Below, piece by piece: positions 317-19,836 of a stretch of 59,395 bases of DNA. The translations under genes were made by a program, and so were the position numbers. Source of the DNA: Octopus bimaculoides. Lineage: Eukaryota. The notes beneath the pieces are model-generated. The model searched no databases. It was not told where the DNA came from and saw only the letters and a list, made by a program, of their open reading frames with translations. Numbering within the stretch: the stretch's first letter is position 1; each line of letters begins with the position of its first letter. The DNA lies in contig NC_068992.1 of assembly GCF_001194135.2 (NCBI RefSeq), forward strand, positions 61,843,436-61,902,830, read 5' to 3'.

Positions 317-419
317 TAAACCAATAAAAACAACACAGTTAAAATTTGGCTAACTCACAGTTTACTGCCATAAACTAGTGAAAGTAAATTGTGCTAAAAA
401 AAATGAAAGTAAATTGCGA

Positions 420-720
420 TTGAAAGCGGGAGTGATGACAGTGATATACCAGAATTTCATAAAACACGTTGGATATCTGATGAATGGGCTTCCTAAGTGG
501 ATCTCGGTAACTTCTATACTCATGAAGTTGTCAACCATTCATCCAATTTTGTTGATCCAGAAAAGGGAGATATAAGCTCGCCAATAAATAAATAAATAAA
601 TTTCGATAACGAATTTGGATTAGTGATGATTTACTTACATCATTTTTACGAGCATGCGTAACGAAGGGAATTTGGAAATCGTAAGAACTATTCACGAATT
701 TTATTTCTCTATTAATCCAT
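420..720 (+). pseudogene. Decayed Merlin/IS1595-type transposase, C-terminal half
   Basis: Translates to ..WISDEWAS*VDLGNFYTHEVVNHSSNFVDPEKG.. then ..DDLLTSFL/EHA*RREFG.., the ISXO2-like SDxW..VNHS.NFVDP..YL.EF.WR motifs, with stops and frameshifts. Confidence 0.8.
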
Positions 721-7200: not shown

Positions 7201-7892
7201 AAAACCTGTTGGCTTAAGACTTCTGTAGTGAGTGGGCTCTCTGGAATATGGAGAAAAAGACCTCACTACTCAATGTCAACAACTGGGGATTGTCTCTCTT
7301 TGGCTGTCGATTGCCAGTGACCCTGTTATCTTGTGGGTTCCAATAGGCCAGCAGGAATTTCCTGAAATGCAAGCACAGTTTGAAGACCTCTGTTCCGGAG
7401 TTAAAGATGTTTTTTTTCTTTTTAGGAAGATGTTTATAAATCTATATTTTGGTTTGCAATTAATGTGTGTTGTTGTAGTTGTTAGAGGCAATCTTTAAAT
7501 TAGTTTTATATTTAATTCCAGTAGTCTTTCTTCCACTGGCCTTTTCCATTCTTTTGCCTGTCTCTACCACAAAATTTCAGTTTGTTTTTAGATTTATTCC
7601 ATTCAGAATTGTGTAGACAAAACAGATAAATTTCTACATTGAATCCACTGGCATAACTATAGATGTGTGCTCCACTCACACCACCACTGTTGCTGCTACC
7701 ACCACCACAGGGGATATTTTTCAGATGGTGTAGATTATGATTATGTCAGAATTTGATTTGAAAAAACTGAGTGAGGATGACTCAAATAATTCACACACCT
7801 CGACTTTGTTTCCTCATATCTTTTGATGAGACTGTCAGAATTAGCCACCTCCATCATCAAAACATTTTTTTTGTACATCAAATTCCAATATA

Positions 7893-8190
7893 TAGGTACC
7901 AAATCTCTTATCCGGAATCCAGATATTTTTGAAATTGGCTAGCTTTGAATTTCGTGGGCTGCAGTAGTTCGCCTATACATTATATGTAGTGCAGTATTCT
8001 ATATTTAAGTTTTAAGTAGCTTAATAAGGAACAGACCCTGCTTTACAAATTTATTAATTAGTATATGTTATACAGTTTTGTTCTTTACTTTCTGTTGTTT
8101 ATTTTATATTTTCGGTATATATTTAGCCTGTGTCCAGAAATCTAGACCACCTCTGGTCCCAAGGTTGCCGGATAAGAGATTCAGTACCTG
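7893..8190. mobile_element. pogo/Tigger-like MITE
   Basis: Imperfect ~28-bp TIRs (TAGGTACCAAATCTCTTATCCGGAATCC / GGTTGCCGGATAAGAGATTCAGTACCTG), with TA on both flanks. Confidence 0.7.
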
Positions 8191-8711
8191 TACTCAAAAT
8201 GTACACCAACTAGAAAATCTCATGATGAAAATATACATTTTTGCCAAAGGTTATGAAGAAACAAAGTCAGGGTGGGGCACACTTGTGTAGATATGCCAAT
8301 CCACCTCTAAATAGTCAGGAATCTGTCAGCTGGCAGAAACGTTAGTATGAGTTCAAATTCCGTCGTGGTCGACTTTGCCTTTCATCCTTTCGCGGCCGAC
8401 AAATCAAGTGCCAGTTGCATACTGGGGTAGATCTAATCGACTAGCCCACTCCCCAAAGATTTCGGGCCTTGTGCCTAGAGTAAAAAAAAAAAAAAAAAAT
8501 TAACCAGTGCAAAAACAACTAGTGGTCAGTAGAGACAGCTGAAAACTACTGTTAAAGTGTGTGTGGTGGTGGGGAGCACAATAGCAAAAGTGACAGATGG
8601 AAATTACTGATGGGGAAACAATGAAGATAAATGAAAAGTTCTTTTATGAGAAAGTGTTAAACAACAACATTACCCATTCATACATACACAAAAATACATA
8701 CATATTGTACC

Positions 8712-9066
8712 AGCCATGGTTGCGTAGTAAGAAGCATGCTTCCCATCCACATGGCTCTGAGTTCAGTTCCACTGTGTGGCACCTTGGACAAGTAAGTGTC
8801 TTCTACTATAGCCTCAGGTTGACAAAAGTCTTGTGAGTGAATTTTCATAGATGGAAACAGAAAGAAGTCCATCCTGTGTGTGTGTGTATGTATGTGCGTG
8901 TGTCTGTGTTTGCCTACCACCTCGTAACCTAGTAGTTCAGAAAAAGAGAATGATAGAATGAGTAACAGACTTAAAAGCAAAAGTACTGGGGTCGATTCAT
9001 TTGACTAAAAATTCTTCAAGGCGGTGCCCCAGCAAGGCCGCAGTCTTACGACTGAAACAAGTAAAA
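8712..9066 (+). mobile_element. tRNA-derived SINE, long family with central microsatellite
   Basis: Head with GAGTTCAGTTCC B-box-like motif and tail ending ATGACTGAAACAAGTAAAAGA-like sequence; many homologous copies in the window. Confidence 0.8.
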
Positions 9067-9070
9067 GATA

Positions 9071-9385
9071 CATATACATGCACAAAAATGCATAAATGCA
9101 CACAAACATATACATGCACAAAAATGCATAAATGCACACAAACATATACATGCACAAAAATGCATAAATGCACACAAACATATACATGCACAAAAATGCA
9201 TAAATGCACACAAACATATACATGCACAAAAATGCATAAATGCACACAAACATATACATGCACAAAAATGCATAAATGCACACAAACATATACATGCACA
9301 CAAATGCATAAATGCACACAAACATATACATGCACAAAAATGCATAAATGCACACAAACATATACATGTACAAAAATACATACAT
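9071..9385. repeat. 36-bp minisatellite, about 8.5 copies, at the SINE tail
   Basis: Unit CATATACATGCACAAAAATGCATAAATGCACACAAA, near-identical copies. Confidence 0.95.
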
Positions 9386-9671
9386 ACTCGCATATTAAGC
9401 AAATCGTACAGAAATAAGTAATTTTCATTTTATTGAGAAAAAAAATTGATGTGAGGGACTAATCTCAATCGCTGATTAGTAGACTGGGTAGATAGCGAGA
9501 ACGTGTGTGTGTCTTTGACTGCTCAGATCAAAGACAATGTCGGCCTCACCAGCAAACACCAATACATGTGTTTGTATTGAAAGAATGAAAGTATTCAATA
9601 ACAAAATTATTTACATTCTTGATTTTTTCATCTTCAAAAAAAAAAAAGCAAGCTTTTCATCACTAAAATCA

Positions 9672-10613
9672 TTACACAGGATAATAGTGCCGAACCCAGT
9701 AGATAAATGACATAAATGTATTATCTTTGTGAACACGACGCCAACTGAATTCTTGTAAGTAAGTCGAGAAGAGATTATCAGAAAGTCCATACAAATGTTT
9801 ATATCTATTTTTCACGTTATTCCACGTCCCTTCTATCTTGTTTCTGTTGAGTTTTTCATCTTTGGGATCGATAAACTGAAGATTGCGATCAGCTGATTCT
9901 TGAAGTTTTTCATAGGAATGACAACCATCCGTTACTATGCAGGTGCCTGGTAACACATGTTCAAGGATGATAGGTAACAAAGTGGCACCACTTTGATCAG
10001 GGACAGGGACAAGGACGGAATTAAGACTGTGGCGCTCCACCATCCCAAGAATCAAGTGGCCTTCCTTATAATGACCACGATGATATTGGCGGTGCATAAA
10101 TTTTGACTCGGCAATATCTACCTTCACTCCTTCTCCTCCAATCTTTATAGGATGATCAATGCACCACATGGCACAGACATCACGAAAATAGTTATACCAA
10201 TTAACTATGGCCTCTGTACCAACACCGACCTGATTCATAACAACAGACTGCGTGGACTCAATTGACGTCCACCAATAAATAAGTTCAAGATGGCGGGTTA
10301 GACGGATAGAAGACTTAGAAAAGAAAGAATCATTCCTAATACTACGATGAGATTTGCACATAGAACAGTACCAAACTTTCCCGTCTGAACATTGTTTACG
10401 AGTCACAAAAGTCATGTGCTGAGTACAACATACCACTGAATTGTGAAGTAAACCGACCGATGCAAGGAACTTAATTGTACAATCAATATTCTTAGTTACC
10501 TGTTGAATATCGTGTAGAGTATATTCCTTTTTAATTAGATCTTCTTTATTAATGATCTCGTCCACGATTTTTACCCGAATTTTCGGTTTCTTACGTTCAC
10601 ATATTTCAGTCAT
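9672..10613 (-). CDS. Merlin/IS1595 (ISXO2-like) transposase-derived protein, 313 aa, first catalytic Asp replaced by Ala
   Basis: Uninterrupted ORF with a Zn-ribbon-like region (CCTQHM..CSDG.VWYCSMC..RSIR.DSFF), IGGEG.KVDIAESKF, LLPIILEHVLPGTCIVTDG, IEGTW and YLQEFSWRR. Splice acceptor TTTTGTATTTTCCATTATTTCAG ends at 10669; AATAAA lies at 9434-9429 (-). Confidence 0.85.
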   Translation of the reverse strand: MTEICERKKPKIRVKIVDEIINKEDLIKKEYTLHDIQQVTKNIDCTIKFLASVGLLHNSVVCCTQHMTFVTRKQCSDGKVWYCSMCKSHRSIRNDSFFSKSSIRLTRHLELIYWWTSIESTQSVVMNQVGVGTEAIVNWYNYFRDVCAMWCIDHPIKIGGEGVKVDIAESKFMHRQYHRGHYKEGHLILGMVERHSLNSVLVPVPDQSGATLLPIILEHVLPGTCIVTDGCHSYEKLQESADRNLQFIDPKDEKLNRNKIEGTWNNVKNRYKHLYGLSDNLFSTYLQEFSWRRVHKDNTFMSFIYWVRHYYPV

Positions 10614-10795
10614 AATTAAAACACTTTCTACGAACTTCTCGGAGAAGCGGCGTACTTGAAACTGATAACTGAAATAATGGAAAATACAAAACCTCGAATT
10701 GCCGAAACGAATAAGTATGCGTTTCAAAATTAGTAAATCATTACCTCTAGCTTTTTAGTTAGCGAAGAAATTGCATAATTTATATACATACGTAC

Positions 10796-10833
<38 letters not shown>

Positions 10834-12387
10834 TTGTTTTGATCTACTTTAACTCTGGTCATAAATAGCACTTCCAAAAAATTTAAAATAAATAATTACA
10901 TCTGAGTTTCAATTCTAATTTTATCGATGCGATATTTATTTTTAATAACAAGTGTTTACTTTTCGGTAATGTTAATTCATTAAGTGAACCGAATTTTTTT
11001 TGTTTGTTTGTTTTACCTTTGTGTAAAGAAATGAAAACAATATAATATCATGAACTATTTATATGTACTTATTCGTTTCGTTTAAGAAAACCAAGTTACT
11101 TTTTTATATTCACCATTATTTTTTGTCTACTTTTACTTTCCAAATGCAGAATGAATGTAATTAAATAACAAAAAATTAACACCACTTTTTTATTATTTCG
11201 ATTTTTTCTTTTTTCAGATCAATTAAAATTTTTTTCCTTTTACTATATATCTATATGAATAAATAACTTTCAGCCATATAGTTTTGTAAACCAGGGAGAT
11301 AACTCCTGAAAATATAGTAAAACGTGACAGATTTATTTATATTGAATTGGGATTTATCCGTGTTTTATTCTATTTTCTTCTCTATACTAGAAAACAGTAA
11401 TTGTTGTTGATCAAGTTTTCCTGTTTAAAGACGTAGTCGTCACTCTGCGATGGAGTAGCAATGTTAAGAGTTCCGTTCCTAATGACGGTCGATAGAATAA
11501 GCATCAGTTGAGCACTGGAGTCGATGTAATCGACTTTATCCCCCGAAATTGCTGGCCTTGTGACAAAATTTGAAACAATAATTAATACGACACTTTTCAG
11601 AGTTAAAGATAGTTGACTCTGAATTAATTACATAGAGAGAGAAAGAGAGAGAGAGGCAAGGGGCATGAATCACTAACGTAGGTGGAACAATAAAGGACGA
11701 AGAAAGGCTGACAAATGAAATGTTGCCAAGTAACTCTTCACCCCGCCATAAAAAGGTTGGTCTCAAGGGATGGGTGGAGTCGGTGTGAGAGAGACATTTG
11801 GAGGGGTGGATATTCAGAGAATACTGAATGAGGTACTTATTTGTGGCATATACAAGCATGCAGTGCTTCCAGTGGTCAGTTTTGTAGCGGTGGATGGATC
11901 TCCATTAGAAATTCATATCACCAGACATTCTAATCCTTCATTTCTCCCTCTGACCAAGGTTGTAGCTGGTCAGCCAGACTTCGTTCTCAATGAGTCATCA
12001 CCATGTGACTGAACTCGTTGAGTCGTCACAGACTGGTGACTGAACTCGTTGAATCGTCACAGACTGGTGACTATACTAACTTTTTGCTTGGGGTTTCTTG
12101 CTTTTATAACTATCCAGAAGGATAGATATATCATTGAGAACAATAGATTTAGTTGGTGGTCTTGTTATCTCTATCTTAGCTTTTGGTGGACTAGAAGAGG
12201 TTAGAAAGGGTCAAGTGGTGAAGACATTATTTCAGCCTAGCTAAAGGCATCTGGAAAATGTAAAACTGCTGTCAGAGAAAAACCATTGTTCCACCATGGG
12301 AAAAGTTCTGTCGCAGTGTTAATTTAAATTTGGCTATGGTGGATCGAATCCACTTCATGCATGCAAGATCCACCACATGTATACAAA

Positions 12388-12615
12388 CTAGCTGACCGTG
12401 TGCCGTCAAATATGACGGCTAATTGTAGTAATAAGGTACATAATAATCACTGATACAAACATTCACATACTTCCCTTGTACATGCTCACACACACAAACA
12501 CGCACATATACTCAAACAAAGTTGAAATGCTATTTGATTTTTTCGTTTGATTTTTTCGTCCAACGTAACTGGTNNNNNNNNNNCCCTTCTTTTCTCAGTC
12601 ATATGCTGTGACAGA
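12388..12615 (-). mobile_element. Short non-autonomous Helitron (3' end clear, 5' end tentative)
   Basis: Hairpin GCCGTCA-AATA-TGACGGC at 12402-12419, then CTAG|T on the minus strand at 12388; possible A|TC start at 12615. Confidence 0.6.
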
Positions 12616-12659: not shown

Positions 12660-13985
12660 CTCAATCACTCCCAGGCAGAGCTCTCTCAAAGGTATCAATC
12701 CCCTCATTAACCTGCTTCCTCCATCTGTGGCGATGACAAGCATTGCTCTCCCAGTCAGTCTCTTGGGAGCCCTTAAATCGCAACCTTGGTTTCTGCCAGG
12801 GTCTCCTTCTATTCACAAGTTCCCTACATAGCATCTGCTTAGGGATCCTGTTAATAAGGTGTCCAGTCCAACGTAACTGGTGCTTGTGCACCATTGCCTC
12901 AATAATCAAGCTATCAGCTCTCCTCAGGACCTGCATGTCTGGAGTTTTTATTGGTCCCAGCCACCAACATTCAGAATGTGTCTGATACAGCTCTGATGAA
13001 AACGTTCAAGGCCCCTTACATGACGTTTATAAAGGGTCCATGTCTCACATGAGTAAAGGAGCGATGTCAGTACACATGCACGGTACACAGCAATATTTGT
13101 TTGCTCTGTGACACGAGACTGAAGAGACCGGAAGGAATAAGTTCCTCTCTGCAGCTTGAAAGATATTTCATCATCCAGGGAGCAAGAACGGCTGATTGTA
13201 CTTCCCAGGTAGGCAGACTTGTTTACCACTTTCAGAAATGTGCCTTCAACCAGGATAGCTGGTTCCAGATATGGTGCAGGCTAGAACATTACAACAGTCT
13301 TGTCCAGGCTAATGCTGAGTCCAAATTCCTTGCAAGAAGCAGAAATATAATTCATAAATATTTGTATGTCATACACTGTATGAGTGACTAAGTCACAGTC
13401 ATCTGCATAAAAGAAGTCATGAATAAGAGACTGGATAACTTGGCAGCAAATCCGTGCAGATTAAAGAGGCGGCCAGAAGATCGATACCTGACATATATTC
13501 CCAGAGAGCTAACCTTAGCAAAAGCATGAGTAAAAGCAGCAGCAAAGTACAAAGAAAAGAGTGTTGGGACAAAGATGTTACCCTGCTTGACAGTATTCTT
13601 TACGGGAATGGGTCTCACAGTGTCACCACAACATTGACCCAAGCTTCCATCCCATCATGAAATGCTTTAATTATAGATTCAAAGTGATCCGGACATCCAA
13701 GTTTGCTAAGTATTTTCCATAGCAAGGCCCTATTCACAGTATCAAAGGCCTTGGTTAAATCAATGAATACCTGGACAAGATCCATATTCTGCTCATAGCA
13801 CTCCTCCTGCATCTGTCTTGCTGTGAAAATAATATTCATTGTCCCTCTACCAGATCGGAAGCCACATTGAAATTCAGATAGGACATCATTTACGAGACAC
13901 CCATTCAGACGGGTAAGAAGAATATTTGCCAGAACCTTGCCAGCAGCTGATAGTAGAGCAATACCTCTGTAGTTACCACACATTG
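12660..13985 (-). mobile_element. RTE-clade LINE, 5'-truncated and degenerate reverse transcriptase
   Basis: CGNYRGIALLSAAGK, QCGFRSGRGT, FIDLTKAFDTVNR, VKQG, LLYSCETWT and QLRWTGH motifs spread across frames with stops. Confidence 0.93.
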
Positions 13986-17844: not shown

Positions 17845-18864
17845 TAACAGCAAGTTGTTTTACACCTATTGCACTAATTATTTTTTGTTCTTGAGCTCGG
17901 GTCAAACACTATAGTTTAGAGGCCAGGGACTAACGATGTGTGACGATGTGAATGTTTCGAGTCCTCCCCGCCCCCCGGTCGCGAGCGCGCATTTTTTTTC
18001 TTCTTCATATTCGTTCCCAGCAAGTTGTTTTACATCTATTAGACTAATTTTTAAAAAAATTTGTCACCGGGTCAAACGCTCAAGTTTGATCAATTTTTTA
18101 ACACAAAGTAAATATTTTTTTTAAAAACAAAGTAAATAAATTATGGCNNNNNNNNNNNNNNNNNNNNNNNNNNNNNNNNNNNNNNNNNNNNNNNNNNNNN
18201 NNNNNNNNNNNNNNNNNNNNNNNNNNNNNNNNNNNNNNNNNNNNNNNNNNNNNNNNNNNNNNNNNNNNNNNNNNNNNNNNNNNNNNNNNNNNNNNNNNNN
18301 NNNNNNNNNNNNNNNNNNNNNNNNNNNNNNNNNNNNNNNNNNNNNNNNNNNNNNNNNNNNNNNNNNNNNNNNNNNNNNNNNNNNNNNNNNNNNNNNNNNN
18401 NNNNNNNNNNNNNNNNNNNNNNNNNNNNNNNNNNNNNNCCCGCCAAATCAGAAAGATCCGAGTCCATTAAAAAGTCGGTCTTTCAAAATCCACTGTTGTT
18501 CAATGGTATCAGTACATGAGGGACATTGCAAGTAACTATCTTTTGCGTAACCCCTACCAAATTGGTGGACTTGGGCACATCGTAGAAATAGATGGGATTA
18601 CTGAAATAGATGTGACACCAAAATACTCCCTGGAAGAACATAAAACGACGTTTTAAGAGTAAGATGGGGAAGATTCAACACAAAAAATTATTTACTTTGT
18701 GTTTTATTTACTGTTTAAAAAAAATTATTTACTTTATTAAAAAAAAAAACTCATACATGTTTTGCGTATACGCGCTAGATAGTCGTTGTAGGATCGACTA
18801 GTCACGACTAGCTAGTGCGGATGCGCGAGTGCGCGCACCGAGACCACTAGTTTTGAGTAGTACG
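16907..18864 (+). mobile_element. Internally deleted Merlin element with a nested inverted-repeat element
   Basis: Subterminal IRs at 16907-16936 and 18782-18814. Transposase remnants KVGLSKSTVVQWYQYMRDIASNYLLRNPYQIGGLGHIVEID and PWKNIKRRFKSKMG at 18490-18670. Right TIR at 18836-18864 is 23/29 identical to the TIR at 31826-31854. Confidence 0.85.
16948..18080. mobile_element. Nested element with ~150-bp inverted termini (TTAA|AG start, Kolobok-like, tentative)
   Basis: AGCGTTTGACCCGGTGACAAA..CACATC at 16948-17090 is mirrored at about 17935-18080; the left flank is TTAA and the right flank is CAAG. Confidence 0.55.
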
Positions 18865-19038
18865 TATTATATTATTATCAAAAGGACAAGATCTTAAACA
18901 TATATATATTTATATATAAACATATCCGCTTCTTTGCTGTTCGTTTTGAGTGTTCCTGTCGATAGCAGTAGTGACATTGATCTTGATCGTAGTGAACTGA
19001 GAGAGAGAGAGAGAGAGAGGAAACAAAACAGTGACACC

Positions 19039-19836
19039 ATGGCAATAAAACGTGACAGGAAAGTCTCTCACCATACAGAGCAAGTTACGGCCTCACCCCT
19101 TTCTTCTTCTTTTACTCCTTCAAAAATATCGAATCTATCTTTGTATATTTGCTTTTTTCACCTGATAGCATTCATTCTTTTAGCTTTTGGCACCTACACT
19201 GACACCTTCGAAATTCAGTACGGTTGGAATACATATTTTGGTAAATTTAAATACCTCACATACTGGAATATATGGATACAAACGTTATATTTTGTCATTT
19301 CTTTACTGTATGACCTCATGAAATGGCGAAGCGTGAACAAATACGATCAAAACAAGGTAAGACAGCTGCAGATCGTCATAGATCACGTTCATGCTACTAT
19401 AGTTTTCCCAGTCGGAATTTTTGTGGTGATCACATTCTGGTTAATTTATCATTTCGATCGTGAGTTGGTGTTTCCTTCTTTCCTTGATGAAATCGTTCCA
19501 GGTTGGTTGAACCATATCTTGCACACTTTACCATTGGTCCTTCTCTTTTTGGACAAGTACCTCGTCCCTCATTGTTATCCTCCCAAACTTCGTGGAATTG
19601 GTTACACATTCTGCTACACTAGCATCTACGTGGTATGGATCCTTTTCCTGGCCTTCGCTAAAGGTATTTGGGTTTACCCGATCCTTCAAATCTTAAATAA
19701 TCAACAGAGATTTGTCTTCATAGCTCTTCTATGGTTGTTTGGAATCAGCATTTACCTAGTCGGAGATGGTTTTACCTGTTTCATGTGGAGGGCTTCAGCC
19801 CAACCTATGAAGACCAGAAAGAATAAAGTCAAATAA
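19039..19836 (+). CDS. AIG1: AIG1/ADTRP (FAR-17a) family multi-pass membrane hydrolase, 265 aa, single coding exon
   Basis: FGKFKYLTYWN (Thr74), FPVGIFVVITFWLIYHFDRELVFP, WLNHILHTLP (His162), GIWVYPIL, and about six hydrophobic segments. AIG1 versus ADTRP orthology is not resolved. Confidence 0.92.
   Translation: MAIKRDRKVSHHTEQVTASPLSSSFTPSKISNLSLYICFFHLIAFILLAFGTYTDTFEIQYGWNTYFGKFKYLTYWNIWIQTLYFVISLLYDLMKWRSVNKYDQNKVRQLQIVIDHVHATIVFPVGIFVVITFWLIYHFDRELVFPSFLDEIVPGWLNHILHTLPLVLLFLDKYLVPHCYPPKLRGIGYTFCYTSIYVVWILFLAFAKGIWVYPILQILNNQQRFVFIALLWLFGISIYLVGDGFTCFMWRASAQPMKTRKNKVK

Follow-up and report, generated by a model that had tools for sequence, protein, structure and literature searches.

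Does an uninterrupted transposase open reading frame (ORF) in an octopus genome belong to a transposon, or has it become a gene of its host? The question is raised by a locus in a 59,395-nucleotide stretch of Octopus bimaculoides DNA (assembly GCF_001194135.2, contig NC_068992.1, positions 61,843,436 to 61,902,830 of the forward strand), which as a whole we call the window and whose numbering is used throughout. A preliminary description of this DNA, made from its letters alone, had singled out a candidate domesticated transposase of the Merlin (IS1595-like) type and took it for an exapted, probably non-catalytic DNA-binding protein spliced to a host 5′ exon. Our analysis leaves us fairly confident that the ORF now belongs to the host and descends from a Merlin transposase, as one of an old pair of paralogues (here A and B), with the mechanism proposed below, and the sequence comparisons suggest that this gene is probably catalytically dead. 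Conserved synteny, a low ratio of non-synonymous to synonymous substitution rates (dN/dS), an alanine codon shared by five copies of the gene and the absence of terminal inverted repeats (TIRs) all favor the exapted, non-catalytic protein of the preliminary description; its spliced 5′ exon is not supported, and its presumed single-copy status has to be amended. The ORF in question is the following.

9672..10613, minus strand: coding sequence of the Merlin-derived gene (paralogue A); ATG at 10613, 313 codons followed by TAA, no intron

The 313 uninterrupted codons reported earlier were thus found again, and upstream of the ATG the frame stays open to a TTG at 10727. The encoded protein matches the Pfam domain DDE_Tnp_IS1595 (PF12762) over residues 175-292 with 58.5 bits (cut-off 27, E 1e-15) and the bacterial IS1595 model of NCBIfam, NF033547, with 55.8 bits, which is under that model's 75-bit cut-off; a Pfam scan of the protein found no further domain. 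It is identical to an unnamed entry in UniRef and MetaClust (our P0020). In a neighbor-joining tree the window protein is nested among cephalopod Merlin sequences, where A, B and a third copy recovered from a sequencing run (the SRR copy) are joined in a single clade whose stem is long and whose tips are short, placed beside Octopus Merlins of the transposable element (TE) type. These closest relatives are listed here with their amino acid identity to the window ORF.

Octopus vulgaris CAI9731350.1, chromosome OX597825.1 (locus L001): orthologue of A, 95.5%
Octopus sinensis XP_029643493.1, CM016870.1 (locus L002): orthologue of A, protein the same as in O. vulgaris, 95.5%
O. vulgaris CAI9731413.1 (locus L004): paralogue B, 87.6%
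Logan contig from run SRR11869394 (locus L003): SRR copy, 80.6%

Together with the window these make up the five DNA copies to which we refer below, and every one of them is exactly 942 nucleotides long with neither a stop nor an indel. Paralogue B lies 3.47 Mb from A on the same O. vulgaris chromosome, OX597825.1. Since a 188-residue O. bimaculoides fragment (A0A0L8HZX8) shows 98% identity with B but 91% with A, the two paralogues predate the split between O. bimaculoides and O. vulgaris. A search of annotated proteins at 90% identity or above brought up A and B only (88% amino acid identity, dS about 0.3). Other Octopus homologues are 52-56% identical to the window protein and mostly keep the family motifs VEIDES, TD(G/S)W and VNH. 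A word-index search for deeper orthologues returned nothing between 55% and 81% identity, and in an exhaustive search of cluster representatives the clade was collapsed into the cluster of another Octopus protein (P0003) and only distant Merlins were added. At the top of that exhaustive search stood two very long proteins of 1611 and 1750 residues (P0026 and P0027), each with 11-14 separate Merlin-like stretches of 38-39% identity; in all likelihood these are models in which one predicted gene spans an array of Merlin copies.

The position of the gene can be compared between species through two nested segments of the window.

7413..11804, minus strand: block colinear with the A locus of O. vulgaris and of O. 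sinensis (86-94% in blastn), exceeding the A/B unit on both sides
9556..11471, minus strand: unit of about 1.9-2.0 kb common to A and B, from local alignments of the window, L001, L004 and L003

The colinear stretch measures 4.4 kb against both OX597825.1 and CM016870.1. The smaller unit consists, in the window, of about 860 nucleotides upstream, the ORF and about 115 nucleotides downstream, with about 870 upstream and 150-220 downstream as the wider bounds, and because the outer flanks of the window gene match the A locus and not the B locus, the gene is the orthologue of A and not of B. In a MAFFT alignment of the window with O. vulgaris, identity is 91-94% in the non-coding flanks, where 22 gap events fall within 2.3 kb, and 96.6% in the ORF, where there is no gap event; the flanks, in other words, gain about one indel per 100 nucleotides. 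The gene therefore occupies an orthologous position in different species and, having no TIRs and no first catalytic Asp, has lost the features of mobility, both as expected of a domesticated transposase. Of the single-copy syntenic orthologue that the preliminary description had proposed to look for, the syntenic half was found, as a colinear A locus in two further species, while the single-copy half gives way to two old paralogues. A search of the 10 kb flanking the O. vulgaris A locus on each side found no host-gene anchor.

Selection on the ORF was measured by the Nei-Gojobori method, with p values from Fisher tests of synonymous versus non-synonymous differences. Between the window and O. 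vulgaris A, dN/dS is 0.205 (dS 0.096, p 8e-6) and between the window and B it is 0.177 (p 1e-16); B versus SRR gives 0.194 and A versus SRR 0.29. Across all pairs the ratio stays between 0.17 and 0.30, with p from 1e-5 to 1e-16, far from the value of 1 that had been named beforehand as telling against domestication. On the window's own branch, polarized by B and SRR, there are 10 synonymous and 9 non-synonymous changes where the neutral ratio is 1:3.8. Constraint is strongest in the core of the protein (residues 121-313, omega 0.11-0.21) and weaker in the N-terminal third (omega 0.31-0.52). By these comparisons the ORF is intact and under purifying selection at the level of the protein. A copy that is both fixed at one orthologous position and under selection must be selected at the level of the host, and host-level selection on a position-fixed copy is the usual criterion of domestication.

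These measurements bear on the idea that the ORF is no host gene at all, being either a member of a Merlin subfamily, non-autonomous or regulatory, whose mobility is supplied in trans, or a dead copy that has stayed intact by chance. Such an origin would suit the occurrence of two copies, with a discrete 2-kb unit, on one chromosome, and intact Merlin ORFs without the first catalytic Asp do exist elsewhere in Octopus (P0003 and P0008, described below), in a family in which changes of the triad are common. Yet orthologues that have remained in situ show a dN/dS of 0.2 and no indels, next to flanks with one gap per 100 nucleotides, and although 4.9% of single-base changes would create a stop, none is present in the five copies at a dS of up to 0.37. 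Conservation between O. bimaculoides and O. vulgaris is seen for A and for B separately, annotated proteomes hold just two members at 90% identity or above, and there are no TIRs. We accordingly give very little credence to this idea, less than to any of the others considered here, and continue with the gene as a probable host gene.

What became of the catalytic center in this gene is best followed in three segments of the ORF.

10110..10112, minus strand: codon 168, GCC (Ala) where the family has its first catalytic Asp; GCC in five of five DNA copies
9810..9929, minus strand: retained catalytic signature from Asp229 to Lys268, with the substituted H-x-x-VNH segment in between
10356..10430, minus strand: Cys62/Cys63 ... 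Cys83-x2-Cys86 cluster, with invariant or nearly invariant columns; it would form a zinc ribbon in the N-terminal, DNA-binding part

The family motif VEIDES has become VDIAES in the window protein (E166D and D168A), exactly as first read, with the Ala codon GCC at 10112-10110; the worry that GCC might be a base error for an Asp codon is removed by its presence in five independent sequences, so that the alanine is real. Column 168 holds Asp in 96 of 109 full-length family members, and because conservation among these 109 runs at 88-91% in the three catalytic columns and in that of the Lys, D168A strikes a catalytic column. The protein consequently has no intact D-D-E triad, its first Asp being Ala168 in every copy. 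Asp at position 166 is confined to the A/B/SRR clade (4/109). The remaining features of the site also agree with the first reading in all respects save one: TDGW has become TDGC (W232C) next to the retained Asp229 at 9929-9927, Glu261 of IEGTW is kept at 9833-9831 and the N-terminal cysteines 62, 63, 83 and 86 are all in place, but the H-x-x-VNH segment, which had been recorded as missing, is still there, though two residues short and with substitutions, so that it reads SADRN. Lys268, seven residues beyond Glu261, is kept at 9812-9810, and Asp229, Glu261 and Lys268 are present in all five copies. At the Cys cluster, more distant relatives carry CxxC...CxxC.

An AlphaFold2 model of the window protein (predicted local distance difference test, pLDDT, 80; predicted template modeling score, pTM, 0.77) places residue 168 on a strand formed by residues 164-171, Asp229 just after the strand 225-227 and Glu261 at the start of the helix 260-275. 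The predicted fold is integrase-like, and in the model residue 168, Asp229 and Glu261 take the positions usual for RNase H-like enzymes. The Cys cluster is modeled as short beta hairpins with a pLDDT of 89-95. No solved structure was matched by the sequence of the protein; the top PDB matches of the model are all catalytic cores of retroviral integrases and are modest (E about 2e-3, probability 0.9-0.99). Model and structure matches agree in giving the protein an RNase H-like core. The whole architecture of a transposase is kept, with an N-terminal helical and Cys-cluster (zinc-ribbon-like) region followed by the RNase H-like core. Replacement of the first carboxylate of the triad abolishes catalysis in the DDE transposases and integrases that have been studied, and by analogy with these enzymes the octopus protein would be catalytically inactive.

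The same residues can be read in another way, namely that the protein is still a nuclease or recombinase in which Asp166, on the same face of strand beta-1, replaces Asp168 and forms a shifted D-D-E(K) site that serves some host DNA transaction. E166D does accompany D168A in this clade alone, Asp229, Glu261 and Lys268 persist in five of five copies, and the core is the most constrained part of the protein. Against this, three further motifs by the active site are altered (TDGW to TDGC, HTN to NRN, and VNH lost), persistence of three given residues is expected anyway at overall identities of 81-96%, and there are no TIRs for such an enzyme to act on. A carboxylate shifted by two residues along a strand would moreover lie roughly 6-7 Å away. 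A shifted active site thus appears very improbable to us, and we return to the gene as one that encodes a probably inactive protein.

Merlin TIRs are 24-462 bp long and begin with 5′-GG, and the target-site duplication measures 8-9 bp. Neither a convincing TIR in window positions 8400-12400 nor, at four loci, an inverted repeat that joins the ends of the A/B unit above shuffled controls could be found, in agreement with the preliminary description, and the data within our reach held no near-identical copies flanked by TIRs. The homology boundaries of the A/B unit are fuzzy and the ends of the element cannot be defined from them. A perfect 15-nucleotide inverted repeat is present at 10703-10717 / 11066-11080, its proximal arm overlapping the invariant 5′ block described below; the distal arm has one mismatch in A of O. 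vulgaris and O. sinensis and is absent from the SRR copy (L004 was not scanned). We rejected this repeat as an element terminus, for both of its arms lie upstream of the ORF and the distal one is missing from SRR. Taken together, and at the level of sequence comparison, we regard the following as established: Merlin ancestry, a shared loss of the first Asp, a fixed orthologous position, purifying selection, absence of TIRs and duplication of the unit together with its flanks.

In the flanks of the gene four segments stand out.

10669..10683, minus strand: polypyrimidine-CAG (ttatttCAG) acceptor, in the A lineage only; not supported as a conserved splice site
9429..9434, minus strand: AATAAA, a possible but weak poly(A) signal, 238 nucleotides after the stop
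10696..10714, minus strand: invariant 19-nucleotide block TTATTCGTTTCGGCAATTC, candidate promoter or 5′ untranslated region (UTR) element, 83-101 nucleotides before the ATG
9565..9625, minus strand: conserved block of about 60 nucleotides with TGTAAATA, candidate 3′UTR element, 47-107 nucleotides after the stop

The first two had been put forward as host-gene signals. Both are indeed in the sequence, but they prove to be due to chance or specific to one lineage. The ttatttCAG ends at 10669, which would start an exon at 10668, 55 nucleotides before the ATG; it is conserved in the three A copies, while B and SRR read CAATCG(C/T)TGATG there. A second candidate acceptor, ttatCAG, suggested earlier as an alternative junction, reads CGG in O. 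vulgaris. Because a 10-nucleotide indel distinguishes O. bimaculoides-type from O. vulgaris copies between acceptor and ATG, this stretch of open frame is not coding. Upstream, L003 stays colinear with the genome over more than 1.1 kb and shows no junction. On account of its absence in B and SRR and of the indel before the ATG we rejected the acceptor as a conserved splice site. The A locus is annotated as a stand-alone single-exon gene in both O. vulgaris and O. sinensis, and neither a conserved acceptor nor an additional Pfam domain, the marks of a host-transposase fusion, was found. Splicing to a host 5′ exon, as originally supposed, and fusion to a host exon generally are on these sequences not supported, although a non-coding 5′ exon upstream of the paralogue A ORF is conceivable. 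The AATAAA was likewise rejected as a conserved signal since its position differs between copies, from +238 in the window to +597 in O. vulgaris A (owing to an insertion or deletion of 360 nucleotides), +244 in B and +14 in SRR; in DNA of 64% A+T we estimate that one AATAAA per 240 nucleotides is expected by chance about 1 time in 4.

The other two segments are, on sequence conservation, better candidates for promoter and UTR elements than the acceptor and the AATAAA. TTATTCGTTTCGGCAATTC is identical in A of all three species, in B and in SRR, is unique in the window and is absent from the loci of TE-type paralogues. The 3′ block is as conserved as the ORF in four sequences, whereas the adjoining flank is not; an 18-mer within it occurs exactly only in L001-L004, and the block is absent from the TE-type loci. 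It contains TGTAAATA, which we take to be a Pumilio-type consensus, and a weak hairpin. Neither the 5′ nor the 3′ block matches an Rfam family, the only matches being to microsatellites and below threshold.

Further Merlin copies provide the background against which the gene has to be seen, beginning with two relics in the window itself.

18444-18593, plus strand: Merlin relic bordering an N gap, with ...IVEID retained (E about 1e-8)
413-580, plus strand: weak Merlin relic that keeps SDEW...VVNHSSNFVDP and has an internal stop, E 0.004-0.02

Both of the broken relics described earlier exist, though their coordinates had been approximate, with VEID kept in the one and VNHS in the other; by their sequence they are ordinary decayed copies, unlike the intact gene. 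The D-D-E residues are kept by most TE-type Merlin paralogues of Octopus. One such DDE-intact ORF (P0005) is carried by a unit, 7 kb long or more, whose identity is 99.6% between two O. sinensis chromosomes (L005 on CM016860.1 and L007 on CM016861.1) and 98-99.8% in O. vulgaris (L006, OX597829.1), so far as sequence goes behaving like a recently mobile or recently duplicated element; the unit is far larger than a typical Merlin element. The first catalytic Asp has also been lost in two other full-length proteins, P0003 (O. bimaculoides LOC106877575, VELLES) and P0008 (O. vulgaris CAI9720272.1, VEIGET), which could be either further candidates for domestication or young dead copies.

The coexistence in Octopus of intact-DDE Merlins that look recently mobile (99.6% identical units on two chromosomes) lends some appeal to the notion that the domesticated gene specifically restrains resident Merlin transposons, whether by competing for their ends or by poisoning the active oligomer. 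A published account of O. vulgaris names two Merlin families as recently active (PMC13282606), and the protein combines a complete DNA-binding and core architecture with disabled catalysis. At only 52-56% identity to the resident transposases, shared recognition of ends or hetero-oligomerization is uncertain, and no Merlin-end-like sequences could be linked to the protein. Restraint of Merlins as the specific function is therefore a tentative idea that we consider rather unlikely, and the wider proposal, a Merlin-derived host gene whose targets may be of either kind, is the one that we develop here.

According to that proposal an ancestral Merlin copy would have lost its termini and its first catalytic Asp (D168A, accompanied by E166D, W232C and a reshaped H-x-x-VNH segment), and the Asp-less copy would then have come under purifying selection as a protein. 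A 2-kb unit with its own conserved blocks upstream and downstream would have been duplicated before O. bimaculoides and O. vulgaris split. The protein would bind DNA by way of its N-terminal helices and Cys cluster, with the disabled but most constrained core serving as a scaffold for contacts with DNA or protein and for oligomerization. Its role would not be that of a recombinase; it would regulate, in a sequence-specific manner, either host loci or resident Merlin elements. Transcription would probably start from the conserved region upstream of the gene and yield an independent unit without introns, with no host coding exon fused to it.

Several observations weigh against this proposal or call for caution. 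The DNA binding is putative, being read from the architecture of the protein. Looked up as exact proteins, the window protein and P0001 were both missing from the indexed Logan contigs, and RefSeq has the gene annotated in O. sinensis but apparently not in O. bimaculoides. Some change of the triad occurs in about a fifth of Merlin-family representatives, so the D-to-A substitution is not by itself diagnostic. Finally, with Asp229, Glu261 and Lys268 kept, and an Asp at position 166 two residues before the lost one, the protein might have some residual or altered catalysis.

The surroundings of A and B include two other coding regions. Paralogue B is head-to-head with a gene model for a 538-residue MSS51/zf-MYND protein, 728 nucleotides apart (L004 1-9273, minus strand; OX597825.1 near 79.97 Mb). 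The annotated start of the MSS51-like model is a 23-codon ORF inside the unit shared by A and B, and from the sequence the arrangement may reflect either a shared promoter or an artefact of annotation or modeling. At 18934-19836 on the plus strand of the window is an intact single-exon ORF of 300 residues with a full FAR-17a/AIG1 domain (PF04750, E 7.6e-49), head-to-head with the Merlin-derived gene at a distance of 8.3 kb. We rejected it as a synteny anchor, since the 10 kb flanking the O. vulgaris A locus on each side do not contain it; whether retrogene or true neighbor, either origin would fit. A 36-nucleotide minisatellite at 9070-9382 (8.7 copies, 98% identity), about 290 nucleotides downstream of the stop, yields several spurious long ORFs on both strands. 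An RVT_1 fragment of a retrotransposon without long terminal repeats (non-LTR) is present at 13615-13983 on the minus strand, and the window as a whole holds many N gaps and stretches rich in microsatellites.

New regulators and recombinases are well known to have arisen by domestication of transposases, and cephalopod genomes are noted for transposon expansion and novelty. If the gene is what we propose, it would add a new superfamily to the sources of animal genes and a lineage-restricted gene pair to those of cephalopods, and with active-looking Merlins in the same genomes one could test directly whether mobile elements are regulated by a dead relative that is fixed in the host. A bolder version, which we regard as improbable, is that A and B form an octopod-specific two-member gene family born of Merlin, the first in animals, whose reshaped site (Asp166-x-Ala168, Asp229, Glu261, Lys268) still supports cleavage or very tight binding of ends. 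Were that site still to work, the host would possess, in place of a mere DNA-binding relic, a nuclease or recombinase of the Merlin type or a silencer dedicated to Merlins.

The preliminary description knew of no characterized cephalopod Merlin case. We also found none in the open-access literature, where we met with no animal Merlin-derived gene and no paper naming these proteins or gene identifiers; in work on the repeats of Octopus and of molluscs, Merlin figures solely among the transposons (PMC13282606, PMC10294476). Proposals of Merlin domestication that we found concern only protists: putatively domesticated Merlin/IS1595 genes in Stentor, Symbiodinium and the kinetoplastids Perkinsela and Bodo, from ORF preservation alone (PMC8101967), and macronuclear genes with IS1595 domains in Blepharisma, which have complete triads and are up-regulated in genome editing (PMC9942806). 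The octopus gene would thus be, as far as we have seen, the first domesticated Merlin in animals, a candidate at the level of annotation.

Comparison with these and other systems places the gene as follows. With Merlin, IS1016 and IS1595 (Feschotte 2004, via PMC8101967) it shares the DDE_Tnp_IS1595 domain, a length of about 300 residues, the Cys cluster, the second Asp, the Glu and a Lys seven residues on. Unlike a mobile Merlin it has Ala for the first Asp, no 5′-GG TIRs and no definable target-site duplication, and it is fixed in position across species, low in copy number and under purifying selection. The protist cases (PMC8101967, PMC9942806) resemble it in that a Merlin-type ORF is kept with neither TIRs nor target-site duplications, some of them being syntenic and some altered in the DDE residues. 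In contrast to those genes of unicellular organisms, the octopus gene is found in an animal and combines a D-to-A loss, a dN/dS measured at an orthologous locus, an old duplicate and conserved elements in its flanks.

Animal genes from other superfamilies offer a second comparison, among them those derived from pogo (CENP-B) and piggyBac (PGBD1; PMC9538788), the Harbinger-derived MSANTD2 family (PMC9392472) and the Kolobok-derived genes of Xenopus (PMC6004289). They too are syntenic intact ORFs with dN/dS below 1 that have lost their termini, and in them catalytic residues are often lost while DNA-binding domains are retained. The octopus gene differs from them in belonging to another superfamily, in having no fusion to a host domain and in being a whole transposase encoded by a stand-alone intronless unit. 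The KP repressor of the Drosophila P element, for its part, is encoded by the transposon family itself and moves with it. Like such dead or truncated repressors the octopus protein would be a DNA-binding, non-catalytic protein that coexists with active relatives; unlike them, its gene is fixed in place and its product is only 52-56% identical to the resident Merlin transposases.

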